64,000 nt of DNA, from sequence record NC_028829.1; one strand, 5' to 3'. The position numbers and the translations under genes are program-made. The notes below the pieces were generated by a model. That model did not search any database. It was not told the origin of the DNA and was given only the letters and a program-made list of their open reading frames with translations. Every line of letters starts with the position of its first letter. Positions within the stretch are counted from its first letter, which is position 1. This document shows, piece after piece, positions 1 to 49,007 of the stretch.

Positions 1-539
1 CCATGAGCGTAATGAAATGAAACGTGCGTGTTTGCCCATGATGGCAAGTCAAAGCTCTCTGAAAGCTCTACAGTGACGTGTGTGACCGGATAGCCTTGTA
101 GTTTAAGCTGCTTCAGCAACATATTTTCAAGATACTCGGTTAGATAGTTCATGTACAGCGTATCCGACGGGATGTGAAGATCAGTATCGAATAGCGATAC
201 ATCGACGATCTCTTGATACCAGTCATTGACAGACGAAACAGCAGTGAATAACGGAGAGTCGATTTGTGTACGGTCACGATTTTCAATATCGCTTAACACA
301 TATTCACTGTATCCGTTGACAAGAACTAGACGGTGATCAATTGCGTGTTCAGATTCGTCTACTAACTGCTTGATCGCTTTCTTGCAACCGCTGAAGTCAA
401 TTACGACTTGCTCAGTTTCATCTACTTCGCCGGTGATTTCAACACATAGATTGTAACTCATACCGTTAATTTTACCGTTTTCATCAACGTATGCGTGATC
501 GATGCATGTGATGTTGTTTAAAAACATTGTACTTTTCAT
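1..539 (-). CDS. queD: QueD-like 6-carboxy-tetrahydropterin synthase, long type; 3' end runs off the window
   Basis: Not in the ORF track. Manual translation from the ATG at 539 is open to position 1: MKSTMFLNNITCIDHAY...VVIDFSGCKKAIKQLVD...IDHRLVL...SFHYAHG, matching the long gammaproteobacterial QueD pattern; AG-rich RBS upstream. Confidence 0.75.
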   Translation of the reverse strand, partial: MKSTMFLNNITCIDHAYVDENGKINGMSYNLCVEITGEVDETEQVVIDFSGCKKAIKQLVDESEHAIDHRLVLVNGYSEYVLSDIENRDRTQIDSPLFTAVSSVNDWYQEIVDVSLFDTDLHIPSDTLYMNYLTEYLENMLLKQLKLQGYPVTHVTVELSESFDLPSWANTHVSFHYAH

Positions 540-12075: not shown

Positions 12076-13527
12076 TTATTCTTCGTCTTCGTCGTCTTTG
12101 TACTCAGATACATCAACGCCGTTTTCTTCAGCAAGCTCAATAAGTGCTTCATCAAATGACGGACCGAAGTTACCATTTATAGCGTATTCAAACACTTCTT
12201 CTTGATATGGATCTGAGTTATTCATCAAGAACTCAGCAGCTTCGCGACCCTCTAACCCCAGTACGTTAAATACCGCACCAATTGCAGATTCGCGAACATC
12301 TTCGTCATGGTCTGCTAGAAGTTCATCAACTCGATAACCTTGCTCGGCTACGTATTGGCGTTCTTCGTAATCATCTGTATCATCGACCATTCTATCCCAG
12401 ATATCTTCTGCCATATCACGACCGAATTCACTTTCGTAGCGTTTCGCATATGTGATACGTGTATCTGCGTCGTCGTTCTCGAAAGACCATTCCCATGCCG
12501 CTTCGCGCACGTCCTCGTCCGAGTCAAGAACAAGATCCCAGATAGCAAAACCATTTTCAGCAGCTTGCTTACGATGTTCCCCTTCATCAGATGTTGCAAG
12601 TTTCTCACCCATTTCGTAATCAGAGGCAATAACTGCATTACGAACGTCTTCGTCATCATGGAAAATCAGCTCTTCGTGCATCAGACCCCAACTAGCAATA
12701 CGAACTAGAGTTTGCCAATCTGCGTGTTCAATGATTTCATCTTCACGACCTTCATTGATCCATGCTTCGATTTGGTATTGATCTGCTTCATCGACGTAAT
12801 CTTCAAGAGACGGACCGCCACCGAATGCAGTGTCGTAGCTGCTAGGACGTTCGTGTTCATTGGTAAGAGTAAACGAAACTGAACCGCTCATACTCATCAA
12901 CGCTTGGTTAACGTCGTTGTCGCTCATTGAAAGAATGCTGCGCGTCACGTTCTTACGAACAGAACGGAAATCGTTTGCACCACCTGCTAGACGTGCAAGC
13001 CAGCGGTCGCTAATCTCAGTCGAATAGCCATATTCTTTACCGAAAGTCAGTGACAGTGCGTAGTACAGCATTGGACGGGAAATCAAGTCTTTCAATAGCT
13101 TTTTCTTACTTTCTTCGTCTAAGCGAGTTGCTTCGCGTCGATTGTTATTCAGTGCGTAGTACTCATGATTTGCTGGTAGCTCGTACGCTGCGCTGAAGTC
13201 ATATTCATACGGCTTCATGCCCATTTCTTCTTCATACGTCTCGGTGAACTCACGTAGAGTCGTCAATACACCAGAGAATACCGCAGCCGCAGAGTGTCCC
13301 GCTTTACCAGTCTGAGCATAACCACCAGAGTTCTGGAATGTGATTGAGAAATAACCAGGGTTGCTTTCGTCTACGCTAACCGAGAATCCTTCCCCCGCTG
13401 CGTTGAATCGCGCTGAAGTCTCGCCCGTCCCGTTCTCATGACCCCAATCCCAATCAATGTCGATATTCGCACGATCAGAAATCTCATCAAGGCGAACTTC
13501 TTGATAAAATTCGTTAAATTGTTTCAT
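12076..13527 (-). CDS. Putative capsid-internal protein: shared domain plus acidic HEAT/LRV-like repeats
   Basis: MKQFNEFYQEVRLDE leader; repeats LIFHDDEDVRNAV, LVLDSDEDVREAA, LLADHDEDVRESA; TCTAAATA box at 13556..13563. Confidence 0.65.
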   Translation of the reverse strand: MKQFNEFYQEVRLDEISDRANIDIDWDWGHENGTGETSARFNAAGEGFSVSVDESNPGYFSITFQNSGGYAQTGKAGHSAAAVFSGVLTTLREFTETYEEEMGMKPYEYDFSAAYELPANHEYYALNNNRREATRLDEESKKKLLKDLISRPMLYYALSLTFGKEYGYSTEISDRWLARLAGGANDFRSVRKNVTRSILSMSDNDVNQALMSMSGSVSFTLTNEHERPSSYDTAFGGGPSLEDYVDEADQYQIEAWINEGREDEIIEHADWQTLVRIASWGLMHEELIFHDDEDVRNAVIASDYEMGEKLATSDEGEHRKQAAENGFAIWDLVLDSDEDVREAAWEWSFENDDADTRITYAKRYESEFGRDMAEDIWDRMVDDTDDYEERQYVAEQGYRVDELLADHDEDVRESAIGAVFNVLGLEGREAAEFLMNNSDPYQEEVFEYAINGNFGPSFDEALIELAEENGVDVSEYKDDEDEE

Positions 13528-14577: not shown

Positions 14578-15090
14578 TCACCAGTCGATTAATTTATCTT
14601 CTTCAAAATGAACAATAACGATTTCTTTACTACCGCTTGCACGGTCGATGATATCACGAATAATTTCCCAATCACCACCCGCTAGACCCGCACCAATAAG
14701 AGGTAAGTAGATTTTATCGTCATTGCCTTCAAGATAGCGAACGATACCACGCACAGATTCAGCAATTGCAGAGTATTCAGCGTGTCTCTCTTTCGTACCC
14801 ATGCTGAACTGTGTGTACATGTTAAACACAACAGCTTGAGGGACAGTTCCGTGGTCATCAAACAACGCAACCGAGTATTCACCTAGCTTCAGTGGGTCAC
14901 CGCTACGACCGAAGTCGATATCAGCTTGGTAAACTTCAGGAAAACGTCGTAATTGACCTGCAATACCTGCACCTTGTCTGATAAAACAGTTACAACCTTG
15001 TCCCATGATAAAAGTGCGTTGATGATTAGGGTTTTCAATCGCGTGAGCGAGAGTGGCGACTAAATCGCCACGAATCTCAGATACAATCAT
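14578..15090 (-). CDS. Macrodomain ADP-ribose hydrolase (T4 Tk.4-like)
   Basis: GDL...QGCNCF...GAGIA and PLIGAGLAGGDW macrodomain motifs. Confidence 0.85.
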   Translation of the reverse strand: MIVSEIRGDLVATLAHAIENPNHQRTFIMGQGCNCFIRQGAGIAGQLRRFPEVYQADIDFGRSGDPLKLGEYSVALFDDHGTVPQAVVFNMYTQFSMGTKERHAEYSAIAESVRGIVRYLEGNDDKIYLPLIGAGLAGGDWEIIRDIIDRASGSKEIVIVHFEEDKLIDW

Positions 15091-30091: not shown

Positions 30092-30600
30092 TTTTTCTCA
30101 CTCGTAAGGTAAGTCACAACCGAAACCCAATCAGGGAATTCGTCTGTGCCAAAGTGAATGTGTTCGCCCATAAACTCACCTGCACCATTTTTAGTGCGAT
30201 CATCGATGAGATAATGACCGAAGTTCAATTGCTTATTATGCGACAAGATCAGTCGTTTGTAAGCGGCTTTACCTAAGTAACGCTCAACCCACAATCGTTT
30301 ATCTTGCCACGCACCGGGATTATCCCACGGCGCAGTAGACAGTATATAGCAATCGAAGTGCTTGTTCAACATTTCAAATGCTGCAACCGCACCTGATAAC
30401 GGCTTCATATGAGAGAATATACCCGGGCATTCGTCATAACGCCCCTCGTATTGATTCTTTTCCCACAACGAAAGCGAATTAATACCGCTTTGAAAATCGA
30501 CAAGAACATTGTCCATGTCAATGTATACAATCGGCTTGTCCACTTTCTTCGCACGACGAATCGCACGAATCATCAATTTAACTACGTTCATTAGATTCAT
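30088..30600 (-). CDS. 5'(3')-deoxyribonucleotidase (HAD/NT5C family)
   Basis: YIDMDNVLVDF, YLIDDR. Confidence 0.9.
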   Translation of the reverse strand: MNLMNVVKLMIRAIRRAKKVDKPIVYIDMDNVLVDFQSGINSLSLWEKNQYEGRYDECPGIFSHMKPLSGAVAAFEMLNKHFDCYILSTAPWDNPGAWQDKRLWVERYLGKAAYKRLILSHNKQLNFGHYLIDDRTKNGAGEFMGEHIHFGTDEFPDWVSVVTYLTSEKK

Positions 30601-31042
30601 TCTGCAAATGGTCCCGTATCTCTGTCAATCGGCTACAGAATTCTTGTACAGTTAAAACCGTCTCTGCCTGCTTCTTACGCCCGATTGAATGAGTAAGGGT
30701 AGCTTTACCAGTAGCAAGCAGTGCCTTTTGAAATTTGACGTTCTGAGCCAACGCAGCGTACGCATCATCGAGTAACGATTGATAACCAACCGAACCTCTC
30801 TGAATCGGCTCACCTTGCCAATAAAGTGTCTGAGTGCGCTGCCAGTTCTTCTTTGCACCGCGTGCTTTAGCAACTTTACCTACAAGCTTGCAGACTTCAC
30901 GTTGCATATCAGGGTTTTTAAACTTCAGTGACTGAAGAAACCCTTCCATTGAAGCACATTCAACGCCACGCACAGTGAATGCGTGTGGCGCAAAGTTCGA
31001 CAGCGCACTGGCTGGGTAACCAGCGCCTGATTTGATGTCCAT
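30578..31042 (-). CDS. NADAR-family ADP-ribose hydrolase (T4 gp30.3-like)
   Basis: ALSNF...SMEGFLQSLKF...LYWQG. Confidence 0.85.
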   Translation of the reverse strand: MDIKSGAGYPASALSNFAPHAFTVRGVECASMEGFLQSLKFKNPDMQREVCKLVGKVAKARGAKKNWQRTQTLYWQGEPIQRGSVGYQSLLDDAYAALAQNVKFQKALLATGKATLTHSIGRKKQAETVLTVQEFCSRLTEIRDHLQNESNERS

Positions 31043-32204: not shown

Positions 32205-32244
32205 AGCTATAATACGCAAAAAGGGTTGCCGAAGCAACCCTTTT
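32205..32244 (-). promoter_or_regulatory. PeSL-like promoter/terminator, identical to 17147..17186
   Basis: 40-bp perfect direct repeat; TTGCTT-17 bp-TATTAT. Confidence 0.85.
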
Positions 32245-32261: not shown

Positions 32262-32909
32262 TTATTTTGTCCAAACTACCGAAGCACCTGAACCAGATTT
32301 CTTGTAACCGTACTTTGAAAGGTCTGGAATACGTTGAAAGCTGTCTTTCGCTGTAACTACACCGCGAGTAGCAATTTCTTTAGCCACGTCTCTTGTTGCA
32401 TTACCTGCTTCAATCTGCATAGACAGATCTGGATATTCTTGAGCAATGAATTGCATCATGATATCGTTTTTGCTTTTACCACTGATCACGTTCAACACAG
32501 TTTGAGTAATGTCAGTACCGCGAGTGATATGGAAAACTTTACCACGAGCACGAGACTCAACATCACGAATAATCTCTGCTTCGACTTCTTCAGGTACAAC
32601 GTTCAGTACGTAAGAAGTAAACGCCGTATCGAATGATTCCCCATTTGGGATAGTCAGACTGACATCAGTCCAACCATCAGAAGATGTACCATTGAATTTG
32701 TCATATGCATACGTTTTGATGCCTTCAGAGCGTAAAAATTCAGCGTTACGACCGTATTTACCAGCACCATAGTCAAGAGCAGTACCACCCGGTGTAAACA
32801 TACCTTTTTTGTATAGTTTAACTAGTGCTGCTACTTCTTTACCACGTATCGACGTTGCTGCGGAACTGTACTTTTGTACTTCAGTTAAAAATTCACCAAA
32901 TTGCTTCAT
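32262..32909 (-). CDS. Class I SAM-dependent methyltransferase with a capsid-targeting-like leader
   Basis: ALDYGAGKYG motif I, YAYD, FD..FTSYVLNVV; MKQFGEFLTE start at 32909. Confidence 0.8.
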   Translation of the reverse strand: MKQFGEFLTEVQKYSSAATSIRGKEVAALVKLYKKGMFTPGGTALDYGAGKYGRNAEFLRSEGIKTYAYDKFNGTSSDGWTDVSLTIPNGESFDTAFTSYVLNVVPEEVEAEIIRDVESRARGKVFHITRGTDITQTVLNVISGKSKNDIMMQFIAQEYPDLSMQIEAGNATRDVAKEIATRGVVTAKDSFQRIPDLSKYGYKKSGSGASVVWTK

Positions 32910-32916
32910 TGCACAC

Positions 32917-34362
32917 CTACTTAATATCAATATCAATCAGATAGTTCGTTGCGTTAACGCTGAACTCAATCAAAGTACCGTCAACCGAAACGTCAACGCC
33001 GTTTTCAACGATGTTTTCCATCATCGAGTAAAGTGTTTCTTGATCAAGCATCGCTTCAGAGAAAGATTGACCAACCTTGAATGAACTGAACTGATCATTT
33101 GCAAGAGCACGAATCAGTGAATCAACATCATCAACCATTTCAGTCACTGGACGTAGACTAGACATGATATTCGGGTGGAATACACGATTCGACTCAGCCA
33201 TTGTTGAAAATGCAGTCACTGTTTGACGCTCAGGGGTAACACAACCATCGAACGATAGCATAGCTTCAGCAAATGCTTTACAGTCAAAACGTTTCACGCC
33301 TTTACGTTCCATCATCGCAATCATATCAAGAAGCGGGTAACCTGCTTCAGATAATTCAACGCGATATTCTTCACACACACGACCTGCACGCATAGCATGT
33401 TCCGCGTTTGTTAGAACAATACTTGTGTTGTTGTGTTTCAGCTTCCAACCGTTGTCAAAATACGCTTCTTTCACATCAACAAGATTTTGCCATGCAGTCG
33501 ATGTCAGTGGCGCAGTCGCGATTTCTTTCGTGAAAACGTTCTGAGCATGTTCAATCATGGTGATGTTCTGTTTCAGATCGTATGCTTTGAAGCCTTCTAG
33601 CATCGGCAAGCCAGTATCGTCTTTACGTTCACGAGCGTATGATACGTCTTTCGCTTCTTTTACAATGAACAAGTCCATGATTTTACGGTTCAGTGCAGCC
33701 AATGTCAGTGCATTTTTACCAGACTTGATTTTCATCTCAGTGATGTCAGACAGTTCAGCTTTTGAGTCAACCGATTCAACAGTCACATAAACGTCACCAA
33801 GCTCGATGTTTTCAGCCATTGACAGTACTTCGGAGGCTGAATTGTCGTCGATTGATAGCGATTCAATTACAAGCTTATCAGAATCAGCAAGATTAATTTT
33901 CATTTCACGCATAGGGAAAACAACGTGAATGTCATTTTTCTTATAACCAAGCTTAGTCGCTTCAGCAACAACTTGATCTAAGTAACCGCCTTTAATCACG
34001 ATGCTAGGAAGACGCGCTTCAGTACACATGATCATAGACTTAACTTGCTGTAGCTCATGTGCTGGCAATGATAAGAATTCGTTTTCCATAAGCAAGTTGA
34101 TTGTGCTTACGTTCTCGCTCAGATTGATATCGAAGTTTTTCTCATCGACGTTTTTATCTTCAGCAAGTTTAGTACTCATGATAGATTTAAGCTCATTTGC
34201 CTTTTCCATCATGCCGATAGTTGTTTCAACGCCTTTGCCTTTGCTGAACTCAGTAGATGCAGTGCCTAGCTCAACAATAACTTGACCAAACTTAGGGTAG
34301 ATTTTACCACCCTGAGTTTGACGGCGATTTTCACTCAGAAATGAGTCAAAGTTACCTAACAT
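32917..34362 (-). CDS. Putative capsid-internal protein, possibly a degenerate P-loop kinase
   Basis: MLGNFDSFLSE leader; IYPKFGQVIV followed by a non-canonical Gly loop. Confidence 0.5.
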   Translation of the reverse strand: MLGNFDSFLSENRRQTQGGKIYPKFGQVIVELGTASTEFSKGKGVETTIGMMEKANELKSIMSTKLAEDKNVDEKNFDINLSENVSTINLLMENEFLSLPAHELQQVKSMIMCTEARLPSIVIKGGYLDQVVAEATKLGYKKNDIHVVFPMREMKINLADSDKLVIESLSIDDNSASEVLSMAENIELGDVYVTVESVDSKAELSDITEMKIKSGKNALTLAALNRKIMDLFIVKEAKDVSYARERKDDTGLPMLEGFKAYDLKQNITMIEHAQNVFTKEIATAPLTSTAWQNLVDVKEAYFDNGWKLKHNNTSIVLTNAEHAMRAGRVCEEYRVELSEAGYPLLDMIAMMERKGVKRFDCKAFAEAMLSFDGCVTPERQTVTAFSTMAESNRVFHPNIMSSLRPVTEMVDDVDSLIRALANDQFSSFKVGQSFSEAMLDQETLYSMMENIVENGVDVSVDGTLIEFSVNATNYLIDIDIK

Positions 34363-34371
34363 GTTAATTCC

Positions 34372-34884
34372 TTAATCGTAAAATTTCTGTAAGTTAAGTG
34401 GTTCTTTCTGTTCATCTGGTTGAGCTTTAGCAGTCTTGCCAGATTCGTAAGAATTGACACGTTCTAACATCTGTTGAAGAAAATCGAAATCAGTTTCTTC
34501 ACCATCAATCGAGTAGTTAGACGAATCACATAAGAATACTTTATATTTAATCGCTGTATCTTTTCTTTCTTTCTTAATACGTTGTACAAACGCATTGAAG
34601 CAAATACGAGTGATATAAGCGTGTGGGTTGTTATACTTGTCAGTGTCGAAGTTCTTGATATAGCGCAAGCAATGTTCGATTGCGTCACCAATCATCTCTT
34701 CTTTCCAGGTTGCAGTATACCCACTAAAATTGTAACGGCGAGATAAATTCTCGCTGATCTTCATGATACTGATTGCTACCACGTCAGGGACGGGAATTGC
34801 AGCATCAGGGTGTTTCTTCATTTCGCTTTTCCATTCGCATAAAGATGCGTACAGGGCTTTATTATCTACATAATGATTTTTCAT
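34372..34884 (-). CDS. 55: Late sigma factor gp55
   Basis: HYVDNK.LY, FSGYT.TWKEEMIGDAIE, NPHAYITRICFNAFVQRIKKE. Confidence 0.97.
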   Translation of the reverse strand: MKNHYVDNKALYASLCEWKSEMKKHPDAAIPVPDVVAISIMKISENLSRRYNFSGYTATWKEEMIGDAIEHCLRYIKNFDTDKYNNPHAYITRICFNAFVQRIKKERKDTAIKYKVFLCDSSNYSIDGEETDFDFLQQMLERVNSYESGKTAKAQPDEQKEPLNLQKFYD

Positions 34885-34892
34885 GTCACACC

Positions 34893-35792
34893 TTATACCG
34901 TTACTGCGTGAGTGTATGACAGCTTAGAACTGTTCGCAAGAACACCAAGATTATCCCAATCGATTTCAACTGCACCCGTTTGATTATCTTCTAATGGTGC
35001 AACGGTCAATGCGTATCGAGCAATCACACCGTAAATTGGGTGGAATGATTTTGAGTCTTGTGTTTTATATTGATATGCAATACCAGCGTCTGTTGCTTTG
35101 TCAAAGTTGTATGGGCTGAATACTAAACTTGAGATTTCATAATCACCAAGTTCTTTCTTAACACCAATTGTTACGTAGTCAGTCGTTGCATACTTGTCAT
35201 GAACTAGATATAACCCAGAGTCACATTTATACATGCTAGTATCACCAATCTGTGTAGCCATACCAGTGCCCGTCAATAGACCAAATGCTTCACCACCTGC
35301 TACGATATATGTACCTGTACAACCCGTTGACTTTTCAATCTCAGCAGCAGATGCATGGACGAACGAGTATAATTCTCGACCTTTATCAAAACGGTTAGTA
35401 ATAGCAGATAGCGTAATTGCACTACCAACAGTTGAAATACTGTTTAGTGCATCGATGATATTAGTGTTGATGTCATCTGCGATTTGATCAGCAATAGAAT
35501 CTGTGATAATCGATTCATTGACACCAAGTGCTTGCATGTCTTGAATTGTTTCAAGTGAGATTTCAGTTTTTAGCTTTGATGATTGAACTTGTGCATACCA
35601 GCGATCAAGTCTAAAACCATGTGGCAGCCACCCACTCGCGTCATCAGCTTCAGCTACAGATTTGAAACCGAACGCAGTCGCAACCGGTTGAGTTGTTGGC
35701 TGTTCTGAAACGATTTGCGTAAATATTAACGGGTATAGTCGTTTTTGAACAGAAACAATGTCTGGTAAACCGTTACTATTAGATACAGTCAT
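34893..35792 (-). CDS. Truncated gp23/gp24-like capsid protein paralog
   Basis: KRLYPLIFTQIVSEQPTTQPVATAFG and FSPY...FHPIYGVIARYAL resemble T4 MCP motifs; TATAAATA at 35849..35856. Confidence 0.7.
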   Translation of the reverse strand: MTVSNSNGLPDIVSVQKRLYPLIFTQIVSEQPTTQPVATAFGFKSVAEADDASGWLPHGFRLDRWYAQVQSSKLKTEISLETIQDMQALGVNESIITDSIADQIADDINTNIIDALNSISTVGSAITLSAITNRFDKGRELYSFVHASAAEIEKSTGCTGTYIVAGGEAFGLLTGTGMATQIGDTSMYKCDSGLYLVHDKYATTDYVTIGVKKELGDYEISSLVFSPYNFDKATDAGIAYQYKTQDSKSFHPIYGVIARYALTVAPLEDNQTGAVEIDWDNLGVLANSSKLSYTHAVTV

Positions 35793-35847: not shown

Positions 35848-36087
35848 TTATTTATATGTCTGGTTATCAACCCATTGCTTGAGTTCTGGAAGATGACCTA
35901 TGTATGTATCACCATGCATAGCAAGAGGCACGCGAATGTTGCGCACCCCACCAAGTTTCTCATGCAATTTATCGATATCAGATTGAGACTGTAACTCTAT
36001 TACAGTGTACGGGACGTTTTTGAACTTACAGAGGGAAATTGCGTGACGACAGCCGTCACAGTTGGGAATTGTGTATATCGTTATCAT
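35848..36087 (-). CDS. Glutaredoxin (NrdC/NrdH-like)
   Basis: CDGC active site, VP, IG. Confidence 0.9.
   Translation of the reverse strand: MITIYTIPNCDGCRHAISLCKFKNVPYTVIELQSQSDIDKLHEKLGGVRNIRVPLAMHGDTYIGHLPELKQWVDNQTYK
35849..35856 (-). promoter_or_regulatory. Consensus T4 late promoter
   Basis: TATAAATA upstream of the capsid-like gene. Confidence 0.8.
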
Positions 36088-37852: not shown

Positions 37853-39481
37853 ATGATTGGATTTCAACAATTAAATGAAAACATGAGCGCAACGTACGAC
37901 TATTATCCGGCTCGCTCGACCAAAGAAAACAAATTCTTTGTGATCGACATGAAAGGCGAAGCCAGAGACATCGTTGTTTCGTTCACAACTAAAACAAAAT
38001 CAGATATCGGAAATCGCGGTAAACGTGCGTGGTTCTGTACTGTATCAGCAATGCGCGGCAAAAAAGGCGGTGTTACTATTCGTGAAATGGGAGATGAACA
38101 AAAGCTTCAACAAACTATTGTTAAAGTGGTTCAAGATTTCATGATCAAACGTCGTGCGAATGTCGTTTCAATGCGTGTGCAGAAACTAGGTACGGGTAAG
38201 ATGTTCGACTTGCGCGTTAAAACGTTGTTTAAAAAGCTACGTTACGGCTGTGATACAACTAAGATCATTGGCGTGGGTGGTGAAGAAATTTCGCAAGATT
38301 ACAGCTTCTTTATTGTAACCAAACCAGGGTATAATGCCGATAAGCTATTCGAAGCATCTGAAGAAACAATTAACGATATTGCGTTAAAAATGTCACTCGA
38401 AACTGATATTTCAAGCAAGAAAACGATTATCGTAACTGCCGATGCTGCGTATGACGACTATGAAGATGACGTACTAGGTAAATGGGTAGAAGAAAACCCC
38501 GCTGCACGTGTTCCAAATGATGTTCTTCAAATGCCTCAATATGAAGCGCGTGTAAGTTCGTCTGTTCGTTCTCAATTGAATGAAAGCAATGAACATGTTC
38601 TTGCTAATGCTGCGAAAGGTTTAATTGATATGAGTTTGAATCTTGAAACTGTGGCAGTTTCATTGAATTCATATATCGCCGAATCGAAGAAGCCTCAAAG
38701 CGTTCTGAATAGTATCATGGAATCTCGCTCACGTGCTCATGCAAGTCAGTATGAACGTCTTTCTTTGCAACTTATGCAGGAAGATTCATTTGCGGGTCTA
38801 TCGTCACTTACACAAGCTGCTATTGCTAGATACTCCGCGACTCGTTTTTCATGGAAGGTGAATGAAGAGTTATTACACGGAACGGGTGTTGATAAAGAAT
38901 CACAGATTGTCTCACGCATCGACCAAGCGTTTTCTGAAGCTGGTATGATTGCTGGTGGAATGACGTTATATCGTGGCTGTGAAATGTCAAGTAAACATGT
39001 GCGCTCTATTCTTGAATCTGGCTCGTTTGTTTCGACTGCGTTTATCTCAACGTCAATCGACCCTCTTGTTGCTTGTAAGTTCGTTGAATCAAGCTCTAAG
39101 AACATCATTGATTCAACTGCTAAGAATAGTAAATCAGATATGCGTTCTCTGCTTGAGTCAGATAAGAAAATGAATGTTGTATTCATCATAGAAGCGAGCG
39201 GCTTGCCTGTTTTAGCTTCAGGTAAACACGGTATGAAAGACTCAAAAGAGATTATCATCAACCGTAATACGATGTTTGAAGCTGACGTTGTTCAAATGTC
39301 TGAATACGACGCTGTAATTCGATTGAAAATCAAAGAAGATACGAAGCAAGGTGTATTGTCTGCTTTCAAAAAGCAAGAGCGTTTACACGAGCTTTCAGAA
39401 GTAGCCAATTTCATGCGTTCTGTTGATGTAGATATCGATGCAGATAGACTAACAAAAGAGCGTAGTCCTCTAACACCATGA
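37853..39481 (+). CDS. alt: Alt/Mod-like NAD:protein ADP-ribosyltransferase
   Basis: LYRG, FISTS and a catalytic E in DSKEIII; MIGFQQLNE leader; CATAAATA at 37814..37821. Confidence 0.75.
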   Translation: MIGFQQLNENMSATYDYYPARSTKENKFFVIDMKGEARDIVVSFTTKTKSDIGNRGKRAWFCTVSAMRGKKGGVTIREMGDEQKLQQTIVKVVQDFMIKRRANVVSMRVQKLGTGKMFDLRVKTLFKKLRYGCDTTKIIGVGGEEISQDYSFFIVTKPGYNADKLFEASEETINDIALKMSLETDISSKKTIIVTADAAYDDYEDDVLGKWVEENPAARVPNDVLQMPQYEARVSSSVRSQLNESNEHVLANAAKGLIDMSLNLETVAVSLNSYIAESKKPQSVLNSIMESRSRAHASQYERLSLQLMQEDSFAGLSSLTQAAIARYSATRFSWKVNEELLHGTGVDKESQIVSRIDQAFSEAGMIAGGMTLYRGCEMSSKHVRSILESGSFVSTAFISTSIDPLVACKFVESSSKNIIDSTAKNSKSDMRSLLESDKKMNVVFIIEASGLPVLASGKHGMKDSKEIIINRNTMFEADVVQMSEYDAVIRLKIKEDTKQGVLSAFKKQERLHELSEVANFMRSVDVDIDADRLTKERSPLTP

Positions 39482-39486
39482 TCGAA

Positions 39487-39512
39487 AAAGGGAGCAATTT
39501 GCTCCCTTTTTT
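39487..39512. terminator. Bidirectional terminator
   Basis: AAAAGGGAGCAA-T-TTGCTCCCTTTTT between convergent genes. Confidence 0.9.
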
Positions 39513-40398
39513 ATTCAACTCTAATAAGACTATGACCCCAAACTTCTTCAAAGTCGCTTACCTTTTCAACCATGTAAAGTGTGTTGTAGTCAAGAATCAG
39601 CATTTTACCATCTTCTAGAATCGCGCCCTTCTCTAGTAATTCAGCTTCTCCATCACCACCCCATGCAGGTTTAGCAATAATAGTACCTAGCAGACTTTCC
39701 CATATTTCAACCGTGTCTAAATTATCAAATTTATTACCATTGATTGATGCTTTAATTTGAACTGTTTTATCATTAACTCGTTTGATTGTAGCGAACCCAT
39801 TTGTCATACGAATCAATTCAAAATCACCAGGTCGTTCACACTCAAATAGCGTCGCCCATGTGAATGCGTTCACTCTAGGGAAATCAACATATGTGATCTC
39901 ATCTTCGACTTTAATACCATCATTTGGTAGTCGTCTAATTTCATTAGATGGGTTGTTGTTTTTTAATACAAACATACGCCCGTGCGTTTGTAAAGTATAG
40001 TCCATCTGCTTTGCGTATCGTTCAGCCATGCGCTTGTAAAGATTATAGCGTTTCTTTGCATCTCTGTCGTCATGGTCTGCAAATGCGCTGAATGTAATGT
40101 AATCTGGGTTTTCTCGTTTAGCCTTGTCAAACGTAGCTGCAAGCACCGTACTCATTACCATCAATGAATCTTTCGCGTTGCTCGATTTCTTTAATTCATA
40201 TGAATACTGACCATCTGGTCTTTTCCACATAAATGAAACGTCAATTATGCGTCCGCGTGCTTCATCTTTGCTAGTTATGATTGCTTTATACATAGTCCCG
40301 CCGATTTCAAAAAACGCTTCGTCGTCGGTCAGCCAGTCATAATTCGCTGCTCTATCAAACGCTTCAAATAGCGCGTCATATCCCTCGAATATAATCAT
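39511..40398 (-). CDS. Putative capsid-internal protein, shared-domain family, paralog 5
   Basis: LFE-AFDRAA leader; ITFSAFADHDDRDAKKRYNLYKRMAERYA; TATAAATA at 40422..40429. Confidence 0.7.
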   Translation of the reverse strand: MIIFEGYDALFEAFDRAANYDWLTDDEAFFEIGGTMYKAIITSKDEARGRIIDVSFMWKRPDGQYSYELKKSSNAKDSLMVMSTVLAATFDKAKRENPDYITFSAFADHDDRDAKKRYNLYKRMAERYAKQMDYTLQTHGRMFVLKNNNPSNEIRRLPNDGIKVEDEITYVDFPRVNAFTWATLFECERPGDFELIRMTNGFATIKRVNDKTVQIKASINGNKFDNLDTVEIWESLLGTIIAKPAWGGDGEAELLEKGAILEDGKMLILDYNTLYMVEKVSDFEEVWGHSLIRVE

Positions 40399-40440
40399 TT
40401 TATTGTCTCTCTAAATGAAAGTATTTATACGCACAAACGC

Positions 40441-48123: not shown

Positions 48124-48373
48124 TCAATTTCACATAGCAGTACGTTAACAATGCACCTAGTATAGACGCACAACCTGCTAAAATATACAACTTATCTAGA
48201 ATGAGTAAAAAAGCTGCTATGAATGACATAACAGCCCCACTTCCACTAACGATTAACGCTATTCCCTCGATAGTCAAGTAGACCATTAGGAAAATTGCGT
48301 GAAATATGTTCTTCAATGTGCGTATCAATTTCATCGAATGCCTCAGTGGCTGGCTTATTGATGAATACGTCAC
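48104..48373 (-). CDS. Membrane protein
   Basis: Hydrophobic ORF; true start probably internal. Confidence 0.4.
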   Translation of the reverse strand: MTYSSISQPLRHSMKLIRTLKNIFHAIFLMVYLTIEGIALIVSGSGAVMSFIAAFLLILDKLYILAGCASILGALLTYCYVKLSEEHDV

Positions 48374-49007
48374 ACATACGAATCGCTTCGTTTAGTGCAG
48401 AATGTTTTTCAGTGTCAATGCCAGTCGGGTTAATCAGAATGAATTTACAGCCCGTCGCAGACAAATCCCAATGAATCGGGTTAATCTCAAGCGTCGAACC
48501 AACAACAATTGCAATGTCAGTCGGCAATAGAGTGTCAATATCACCCCAGAAATGGGTGTATAATGGTGCGCCTTCATTGAAGAACACAACACCCGGTTTA
48601 TCACGACGACCTGTACGCAACTCGTATTCATTGTACCCGATGTCAATAACTGTACTGTCTTTTGACGTGTAATCTTGCACGATCTTTGTCAACTCACCGT
48701 GAATATGCTTAACGTCTTTACAACCTGCACGCTCAAGTAAATCTGATACGTTCGCAGTGTAGTTGTCAACGTCGTATTTTTCACACAGTTCAGCAATTTT
48801 GTAGTGTGCTGAATTCGGGTGAACTTCAGCTAATTGTTTACGACGCTCATTGTAGAAACGATGTGTCACTTCATAATTGTTTGCAAATGTGTTGATGTTA
48901 CACACTTCCATGATGTCATGATTTTCCCACAGACCATTTGCGTCTCGAAACGTACTGATACCTGATTCTGCATCAAGACCAGCACCGCTAAAAATGAAAA
49001 TTCTCAA
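48246..49007 (-). CDS. Sir2-family NAD+-dependent protein
   Basis: SGAGL.AESGISTFRD, HIHGEL, KPGVVFF.E, VVGSTL. Confidence 0.93.
   Translation of the reverse strand: MRIFIFSGAGLDAESGISTFRDANGLWENHDIMEVCNINTFANNYEVTHRFYNERRKQLAEVHPNSAHYKIAELCEKYDVDNYTANVSDLLERAGCKDVKHIHGELTKIVQDYTSKDSTVIDIGYNEYELRTGRRDKPGVVFFNEGAPLYTHFWGDIDTLLPTDIAIVVGSTLEINPIHWDLSATGCKFILINPTGIDTEKHSALNEAIRMCDVFINKPATEAFDEIDTHIEEHISRNFPNGLLDYRGNSVNR

Follow-up and report, generated by a model that had tools for sequence, protein, structure and literature searches.

The 64-kb window analysed here, a stretch of DNA identical to positions 62001-126000 of the genome of Vibrio phage ValKK3 (NC_028829.1), a KVP40-like Schizotequatrovirus of the family Straboviridae, contains on its complementary strand the open reading frame (ORF) 195 (32262..32909, stop codon included), which is the subject of this paper. 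Based on the analysis presented below, we propose that ORF195 encodes the 215-residue precursor of a packaged methyltransferase dependent on S-adenosylmethionine (SAM), where a short N-terminal leader resembling that of the internal proteins (IPs) of phage T4 would bring the enzyme into the phage head.

The gene and its start codon

ORF195 is the ortholog of KVP40.0066, belongs in PHROGs to phrog_14016, annotated as function unknown, and is labelled in the ValKK3 record as a hypothetical protein with the note "AdoMet_MTases". Its translation begins with MKQFGEFLTE and contains LDYGAGKYG (residues 45-53), YAYD (67-70) and FD..FTSYVLNVVP (93-106). The frame is open upstream as far as a TTG, as seen in the ORF listing, and the ATG at 32909 is the true start, because it is preceded by the ribosome-binding site AGGTG (32914..32918, complementary strand, overlapping the TAG stop of ORF196), because the KVP40 frame opens one codon before the same ATG, and because every record annotates this start. 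The observation from which the original prediction departed, that of a leader followed by methyltransferase motifs in this ORF, is thus confirmed by the translation and by a genuine start codon. The predicted mature enzyme would consist of residues 11-215 (32265..32879, complementary strand), having 205 residues, a mass of 22.4 kDa, versus 23.6 kDa for the full-length protein, and an isoelectric point (pI) of 8.9.

The leader and the predicted cleavage site

Codons 1-10 (MKQFGEFLTE; 32880..32909, complementary strand) make up a capsid-targeting-like leader with a putative gp21-type site after Glu10 (L8-T9-E10 / V11), as seen by comparison with the capsid targeting sequence (CTS) of T4. In the T4 record, IPII and IPIII start with MKTYQEFIAE followed by A, and IPI starts with MKTFKEFTST. 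It was shown in T4 that the first 10 residues of IPIII are enough for incorporation, with residues 4 and 7 mainly governing the targeting and residues 8 and 10 the processing, and CTS-like sequences are present on other proteins in T4-related phages (PMC9026906, a review of work of the Black laboratory). Relative to IPIII, the ORF195 leader is identical at M1, K2, E6, F7 and E10, with F replacing Y at position 4, as in IPI, and L replacing I at position 8.

In the complete ValKK3 genome, each Met start on either strand that is followed by 60 codons or more was scored with BLOSUM62 against the IPIII decapeptide. Among the 1,817 Met starts (mean score -2.0, standard deviation 6.6) the ORF195 leader takes rank 2 with a score of 28, the top three scores being 33, 28 and 26 and the fourth being 22. 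Rank 1 is ORF327, a 98-residue basic protein at the locus syntenic with T4 ipI, and rank 3 is ORF163, which lies within the window at 12076-13527; the same three, ORF327, ORF195 and ORF163, are also the only ones among 369 ValKK3 ORFs that conform to the strict leader pattern. When the pattern MK.[FY].EF...E is back-translated and at most 2 mismatches are allowed, the window gives 2 matches versus 0.11 expected, both precisely at start codons. The leaders of the orthologs (MKQFGEFLTE, MKKFGEFLTE, MKQFCNFLAE, MKLFKTFLNE, MKLFKDFLLE, MKTLKTFLAE, MKSLTDYLEE and MAKSLNDFLTE) keep position 4 (F/L), position 7 (F/Y), position 8 (L) and position 10 (E), with positions 3, 5, 6 and 9 being free to vary, and the positions that are kept are those important in T4. 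It is noted that the capsid-targeting-like leader supposed in the original prediction is borne out, as one that closely resembles the T4 CTS, both by this rank and by the conservation of the four positions.

The machinery that such a leader would need is encoded by the phage: ORF283 is 49% identical to the T4 gp21 protease (E 1e-62), and homologs of gp22, gp67 and gp68 are annotated in ValKK3. In T4, gp21 cuts 65 residues off gp23 and short N-terminal peptides off the IPs and Alt (PMC9958956). With this 65-residue propeptide, the alignment of the T4 and ValKK3 gp23 proteins gives the sites SFLTE/AEIGG in T4 and AGLNE/AVVNG in ValKK3. The ORF195 leader ends in the same FLTE as the T4 gp23 maturation site, and the LNE of the ValKK3 gp23 site recurs where the leaders end in ORF330, in ORF339 and in the Alt-like protein. 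Since FLTE matches the gp23 site, LNE recurs in leaders and a gp21-like protease is encoded, a cleavage of ORF195 after Glu10 is plausible.

The leader is a module and not a part of the methyltransferase fold, because of the following three observations. In the AlphaFold2 model, residues 1-20 have a predicted local distance difference test (pLDDT) of 49-62, versus more than 90 for the remainder, and the leader is not docked on the methyltransferase domain. In a metagenomic contig of 164 kb, a syntenic ortholog without leader (L040 8001-8615) has the conserved core MSQKHSSAKTSI as its very beginning, with its ATG overlapping the upstream stop and with no alternative start; this ortholog provides a natural control for the requirement of the leader in packaging. 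In multidomain relatives the leader remains the very first segment of the protein and is separated from the methyltransferase core by 100-200 unrelated residues, as in P0121 (MKSTEFITE, then an unknown domain), P0122 (MKITNLFE, then a GNAT acetyltransferase) and P0124 (MRIIEILTE, then an unknown domain). In the family, the tripeptide hydrophobic-x-Glu is present in 90 of 102 leaders of 6-30 residues, as compared with the first 14 residues of 127 of the 369 ValKK3 ORFs (34%; Fisher 2e-23, uncorrected for relatedness).

Outside the window, the ipI-syntenic locus follows homologs of genes 3, 1, 57A and 57B, at about 196-208 kb of the ValKK3 record. Candidate internal proteins (L004 19976-27117, 31824-32195) are the small ORFs with IP-like leaders at this locus, ORF327 (MKTFGEFLIE) and ORF330 (MSIKTFSEYLNE), and also ORF339, which begins with MNDEKIKSFEEYLNE.

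Detection of the ortholog in virions

The particles of Schizotequatrovirus 6E351A were analysed by tandem mass spectrometry (PMC12028318, Table S4). The ortholog of ORF195 in this phage, VP6E351A_0103 (QZI87378.1, phrog_14016, 24 kDa), is 79% identical to ORF195. Both replicates contained it, at 31 and 79 spectral counts, and it is named in that study as hypothetical protein only (PMC12028318). By our own arithmetic on Table S4, this corresponds to 4.6 counts per kDa, to be compared with 7.4 for the portal, 5.6 for the Alt-like protein, 5.5 for the tail tube, 3.2 for the tail sheath and 2.0 for the prohead protease on the one hand, and with 0.9 for dUTPase, 0.8 for the DNA helicase, 0.2 for the single-stranded DNA-binding protein, 0.1 for thymidylate synthase and 0.04 for the ligase, which are contaminants, on the other hand. 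The abundance of VP6E351A_0103 is thus at the level of structural proteins. Moreover, the operon provides an internal control, with the vertex protein and the methyltransferase being detected and the orthologs of gp55 and ORF196, genes that lack such a leader, being absent from the 6E351A virion list. The packaging that had been conjectured from the leader is therefore supported by the published virion proteome of a close ortholog.

The second window protein with such a leader (MKQFNEFYQE) is ORF163 (12076..13527, complementary strand), an acidic HEAT/armadillo-like protein of 483 residues with pI 4.2. Its 6E351A ortholog begins with MKLKLFENFYQE, then VRLDE, and is present in virions with 58 and 109 counts, so that ORF163 is probably another cargo protein loaded by a CTS.

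Other virion proteins were noted beside these. An Alt-like ADP-ribosyltransferase (37853-39481, forward strand) starts with MIGFQQLNE, and its ortholog was found in virions with 122 and 233 counts. ORF203 (39511-40398, complementary strand), divergent from the Alt-like gene, starts with MIIFEGYDALFE, its ortholog having 16 and 61 counts, and a TATAAATA box is located at 40422-40429, 24 nucleotides upstream of it. ORF358 of ValKK3 (L005 654-1763, complementary strand) is a PARP-like ADP-ribosyltransferase starting with MKNLKSFMEE, the probable 6E351A ortholog of which (0357, 43 kDa) has low virion counts of 18 and 4. No N-terminal packaging domain shared among the virion cargo proteins was found by BLAST similarity. 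Genes related to NAD or ADP-ribose elsewhere in the window encode a macro domain (14578-15090), NADAR (30578-31042) and Sir2 (48246-49007).

Fold, motifs and constraint

With an alignment of 90 sequences, AlphaFold2 gives for ORF195 a Rossmann-like alpha/beta fold with pLDDT 91 and a predicted template modelling (TM) score of 0.87. A Foldseek search against the Protein Data Bank (PDB) gives 204 matches at E<=1e-3, and the best 50 of the 204 are essentially all class I SAM methyltransferases, with probability 0.98-1.0. The TM-scores of these best 50 are just 0.4-0.57, and the matches, which include METTL6, toxoflavin N-methyltransferase, cap N7-methyltransferase, DhpI and ChlM, are spread over enzymes that act on small molecules, proteins and RNA. 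In the searches of the PDB and BFVD the generic methyltransferase core alone was matched and a specific relative was not found; likewise, TehB and flavivirus NS5 were the only solved structures matched by sequence, over motif I and without significance (E about 0.4). In the model, it is certain that ORF195 has the fold of a class I SAM methyltransferase, and this certainty does not extend to the class of its substrate. The Rossmann methyltransferase read from the letters by the original prediction is hence upheld by the fold, by the structural matches and by the invariance of motifs I and II described below.

As for the family, ORF195 scores 15.5 bits against Pfam PF13489 (Methyltransf_23), under the gathering cutoff of 27, while its relatives P0028, P0059, P0105 and P0121 exceed this cutoff with 28-32.5 bits; therefore, ORF195 is a divergent member of the Methyltransf_23-like superfamily. 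It shares with PF13489 and with PF08241 (Methyltransf_11) the fold, motif I, motif II and the FD...VL.h.p motif, whereas the motifs TSI (N-terminal), HITR and FQRIP (both C-terminal) are peculiar to its phage family.

In the same alignment, where the sequences have 35-45% identity to the query, the residues T19, D46, G48, A49, G50, D70, F93, N103, V104, H127, R130, G183 and Q192 are invariant. Motif I, LDYGAGKYG (32751..32777; this and the other motifs lie on the complementary strand), is the SAM-binding glycine loop and contains D46, G48, A49 and G50. Motif II, YAYD (32700..32711), contains D70, and the acidic residue of motif II usually binds the ribose of SAM. The stretch FD..FTSYVLNVVPE (32589..32633), with F93, N103 and V104, comprises strand 4 and the post-strand motif, which is of the Methyltransf_11/23 type and not DPPY or PC. 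The two family-specific motifs HITR..DI (32508..32531), with H127 and R130, and FQRIP (32325..32339), with Q192 and the nearly invariant R193, are candidate substrate-binding sites. In addition, the ratio of nonsynonymous to synonymous substitution rates (dN/dS) for this gene is 0.018, as compared with 0.1-0.2 in its neighbours (PMC12028318, Table S8), which fits an enzyme under strong constraint.

Family and distribution

A collection clustered at 90% contains 232 homologs of ORF195, and a search of 1.84 billion representatives gives 132 clusters at E<=1e-30 and 208 at E<=1e-10. At 50% identity the family comprises at least 130 clusters. Of 50,697 phage records, 49 have the family, all of them Vibrio phages, namely Schizotequatrovirus and a few relatives. 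The ortholog in phage nt-1, the host of which is the non-pathogenic Vibrio natriegens, is 82% identical to ORF195. No bacterial or archaeal homologs were found in one genome each of 185,579 species with a pattern-based scan of limited sensitivity. The family is thus seen in phage contigs only, many of them T4-type, and most of its members carry similar leaders. At 14 of about 28 metagenomic loci, T4-type core genes are located within 10 kb, and at 3 metagenomic loci the methyltransferase gene stands beside gp20, gp21 and gp23; it is concluded that the family goes together with the machinery of head maturation of the gp21 type. No conserved gene neighbours across the family were evident at the loci inspected. 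Fusions in the family (P0122, P0140, P0123, P0126, P0142) include GNAT with methyltransferase, DUF5661 with methyltransferase and a 1,110-residue protein with an N-terminal methyltransferase. PADLOC gave no matches for the methyltransferase, ORF196, ORF163, ORF203 or the GNAT fusion.

Operon and expression

The gene is the last in an operon with the order nrdH, gp24-like, gp55, ORF196, ORF195, where 7-9 nucleotides separate the genes from gp24-like to ORF195. The upstream genes (32917..35792, complementary strand) encode the gp24-like vertex protein (34893-35792), the late sigma factor gp55 (34372-34884) and ORF196 (32917-34362), and a GC-rich hairpin with a T run (32219..32244, complementary strand; free energy -18 kcal/mol, z -4.2) marks the operon end right after the methyltransferase gene. 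A T4-type late promoter box TATAAATA (35849..35856, complementary strand) precedes the gp24-like gene by 56 nucleotides, in overlap with the stop codon of nrdH. It is the sole late box, with at most 1 mismatch, that could drive 24-55-ORF196-ORF195, no private late promoter for ORF195 having been found within ORF196 or gene 55; across the window the box is not enriched, with 3 seen versus 2.8 expected. A sigma70-like promoter precedes nrdH. From these signals it is suggested that ORF195 can be made late alongside a head protein, and it is probably also made earlier.

Regarding the neighbours themselves, ORF196 is a protein of 481 residues (phrog_14490) translationally close-coupled to ORF195 and flagged by the 6E351A authors as 'Defense?'. 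The gp24-like vertex protein is short (299 residues), and its gene stands beside gene 55 and distant from the main head cluster; the KVP40 annotation mentions a possible internal deletion in this gene.

The substrate

The original prediction pointed to a likeness of ORF195 to the methyltransferase found beside bacterial dnd clusters. This stands insofar as TIGR04096, the dnd-associated putative methyltransferase, is the nearest named NCBIfam, with which 45 of the 90 members share a weak local likeness over the SAM-binding N-terminal 75-90 residues (best E 6.6e-8; for P0059, the one match with a bit score on record, E 1.7e-6 and 27 bits over model positions 14-86). It does not stand for the window protein itself. 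ORF195 has no match to TIGR04096 at E<=0.1, the scores of its relatives are far under the curated cutoff of 150 bits and concern the SAM-binding part alone of a model of 478 positions, and no dnd genes were found among the listed products of about 94% of the ValKK3 record (positions 111001-126000 not being listed); ORF195 is hence not a member of TIGR04096.

A role of ORF195 as methylase of dPreQ1 was also considered and is rejected. In the sister phages VH7D, phi-Grn1 and phi-ST2 the methylation of dPreQ1 is carried out by DpdM, a DUF3109/YkgJ-like protein (PMC10516641). This DpdM is Cys-rich, as opposed to ORF195, which has a Rossmann fold, zero cysteine and no Cys-rich metal sites, and the modified deoxyguanosine reported in the DNA of 6E351A is the unmethylated dPreQ1. 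It is also noted that genes of 7-deazaguanine (preQ0/preQ1) synthesis, for QueD, QueC, QueE and GTP cyclohydrolase, flank the start of the window (window 1-539; 57-62.5 kb and 229 kb of the ValKK3 record).

As to what the substrate may be, the conserved residues of basic or polar nature that lie away from the SAM site (R54, H127, R130, Q192 and the nearly invariant R193) could hint at an anionic substrate, and the GNAT fusions hint at a substrate that bears an amine or is a protein.

The proposed pathway

Based on the above results, we consider, with a probability of about 0.7, that ORF195 belongs with the internal proteins of the head of the T4 'IP' type and that its cargo is an active class I SAM methyltransferase, the activity and the ejection being predicted. 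In the pathway that we propose, the precursor would enter the prohead scaffolding core by virtue of its 10-residue leader, a step that the leader sequence makes quite probable, and the gp21-type prohead protease would then remove the leader after Glu10, which is somewhat less assured and yet rather likely. The mildly basic mature enzyme of 22 kDa then very probably stays in the DNA-filled head, as the mass spectrometry of the ortholog indicates. By analogy with the T4 IPs and Alt, the enzyme would be ejected with the DNA into the cell, where, it is proposed, it would use the host SAM to methylate its target before any phage gene expression.

A wider reading, which we put forward as tentative and with odds somewhat short of even, is that a large family of methyltransferases, seen in phage contigs only, is loaded via CTS-like leaders, injected, and methylates a host target in the first seconds of infection. 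Under this wider reading, the host target might be RNA polymerase or a component of translation, tRNA or rRNA, or a small molecule of defence or signalling, the family would be a methylation counterpart of the ADP-ribosylation by Alt, and the fusions of GNAT with the methyltransferase hint at injected effectors having multiple enzymes.

Alternative explanations

The reading of ORF195 as a packaged, ejected enzyme has to be weighed against several points that count against it. At the predicted site, the residue P1' is Val, versus Ala at the T4 IPII, IPIII and gp23 sites examined. The tripeptide hydrophobic-x-Glu is present by chance in a third of N-termini; ORF196, the N-terminus of which (MLGNFDSFLSE) contains FLSE, has an ortholog that was not detected in virions, and therefore hydrophobic-x-Glu alone does not predict packaging. 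The virion data come from the relative 6E351A and not from ValKK3 itself, and the 6E351A particles were purified by polyethylene glycol (PEG) precipitation only, with obvious contaminants at low counts in the list. The leaderless ortholog implies that the function of the enzyme may not need packaging. With both a late box and a sigma70-like promoter upstream, the timing of expression is uninformative on packaging. Ejection, proposed by analogy, and catalysis are, for their part, predictions.

Some of these points are just those that would favour an ordinary cytoplasmic enzyme, with the N-terminus being an amphipathic helix of the fold and the presence in particles being due to contamination or accidental trapping. 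Such an enzyme would accord with the PEG-precipitated virions, in which replication enzymes are listed, with the position of the gene among early/middle genes downstream of gene 55 and with a sigma70-like promoter upstream, with the ortholog that has no leader, and with the commonness of hydrophobic-x-Glu at N-termini. Against this explanation, the protein has 5 to 100 times as many counts per kDa as the evident contaminants and as many as the Alt-like protein and the tail tube, and the cotranscribed gp55 and ORF196 are absent. A cytoplasmic enzyme would also leave aside the rank of the leader against an experimentally defined T4 signal, the presence in virions of ORF163, the other window protein with a strong leader, the N-terminal location of the leader in multidomain relatives, far from the methyltransferase core, and the undocked leader of the AlphaFold2 model. 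We thus regard a cytoplasmic enzyme as improbable. Less probable still, and indeed very improbable, is a packaged protein that is catalytically inert, in which the methyltransferase fold is reused in an internal protein that condenses DNA or helps ejection. The size and charge of ORF195 do resemble those of IPIII, and to our knowledge the abundant basic proteins IPII and IPIII of T4 have no enzymatic role. By contrast, the invariance of D46, G48, G50, D70, F93, N103, H127, R130 and Q192 across 90 sequences, together with the dN/dS of 0.018, is expected of an active site and not of a packing protein.

The remaining alternative, unlikely and yet the least unlikely of the three, is that the packaged protein methylates DNA, the phage genome being marked by it in the head or on entry so as to escape restriction or a Dnd-type defence. 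The enzyme sits in the head with the DNA, its mature form is mildly basic like the T4 IPs, the nearest NCBIfam is dnd-associated, and there is a precedent in P1 DarB, a methylase-helicase that is carried in the head and affords protection to DNA in cis (PMC5512222). Against this, the catalytic motif IV of DNA methyltransferases, [DNS]PP[YFWH] or Pro-Cys plus ENV, was looked for and found in 0 of the 90 family members, ORF195 included; the lack of any cysteine in ORF195 makes the mechanism of C5-methyltransferases impossible; and the 205-residue mature enzyme has no room for a target-recognition domain. The post-strand-4 motif is of the FD...VL.h.p type, the closest folds, at their low TM-scores among the best 50 of 204 matches, are those of small-molecule, protein and RNA methyltransferases, and the TIGR04096 matches are far under the cutoff and in the SAM-binding part only. 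A sealed capsid, moreover, holds no SAM. The phage also has a DNA methyltransferase of its own, ORF124, which was not detected in virions, and the methylase of dPreQ1 is a different, DUF3109 protein, with the dPreQ1 of 6E351A being unmethylated. The modification of DNA inside the head that the original prediction had envisaged is accordingly not borne out and is judged unlikely, the capsid being without SAM supply and the enzyme without the hallmarks of DNA methyltransferases; the other option named there, a host RNA or protein target, is now the likelier one. For the packaged enzyme that we propose, a non-DNA target (host protein, RNA or small molecule) is thus clearly, if not overwhelmingly, favoured over the phage DNA, and we hold loosely that, as infection begins, the injected enzyme acts on a component or a metabolite of the host.

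Comparison with known systems

The known cargo delivered by heads of the T4 type comprises small inhibitors (IPI*) and a single class of enzymes (Alt). If the proposal is true, ORF195 would add a second enzymatic activity delivered by the T4 head route and acting before phage gene expression, and it would provide a functional handle on the many virion proteins labelled "hypothetical" in large marine myoviruses. Moreover, because at least 130 clusters exist and many members have the same kind of leader, the leader rule is usable as a sequence-only route to predict packaged cargo in uncultured T4-like phages.

With T4 IPI, IPII and IPIII, ORF195 shares the same 10-residue form of the leader, M-K-x-aromatic-x-E-F-(I/L)-x-E, ending in a putative gp21-type site, as well as a small basic mature protein, the presence in virions (for the ortholog) and a T4-like phage with gp21 and gp22. 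It differs from the IPs in that there is no sequence similarity past the leader, that it is an enzyme of a conserved and widespread family and not a fast-evolving small inhibitor, that its gene is in the 24-55 operon and not at the ip locus, and that its processing and ejection are predicted. T4 Alt, an ADP-ribosyltransferase, is a host-modifying enzyme that is packed into the head, trimmed by gp21 and delivered to the cell together with the DNA (PMC5512222, PMC9958956), as is proposed for ORF195, and the ortholog of the ValKK3 Alt-like protein is present in virions at an abundance similar to that of the methyltransferase. The chemistry, however, is the transfer of methyl from SAM in ORF195 and of ADP-ribose from nicotinamide adenine dinucleotide (NAD) in Alt, and the folds are unrelated. 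P1 DarB is a methyltransferase borne in the phage head that acts at entry, as is proposed for ORF195. By contrast to ORF195, which is a single Methyltransf_23-like domain with 205 residues in the mature form, no helicase and no adenine-methylase motif, DarB is very large, combines an EcoKI/TaqI-like DNA adenine methylase with a superfamily 2 helicase, and is loaded via DarA/Hdf.

Finally, in the literature library searched, no paper was found that pairs "methyltransferase" with "capsid targeting sequence". While the CTS route of T4, a packaged host-modifying enzyme (Alt) and a packaged methylase (P1 DarB) are already known, what is new is a compact, conserved and apparently phage-only family of SAM methyltransferases, commonly with CTS-like leaders, having proteomic support in one cultured representative.

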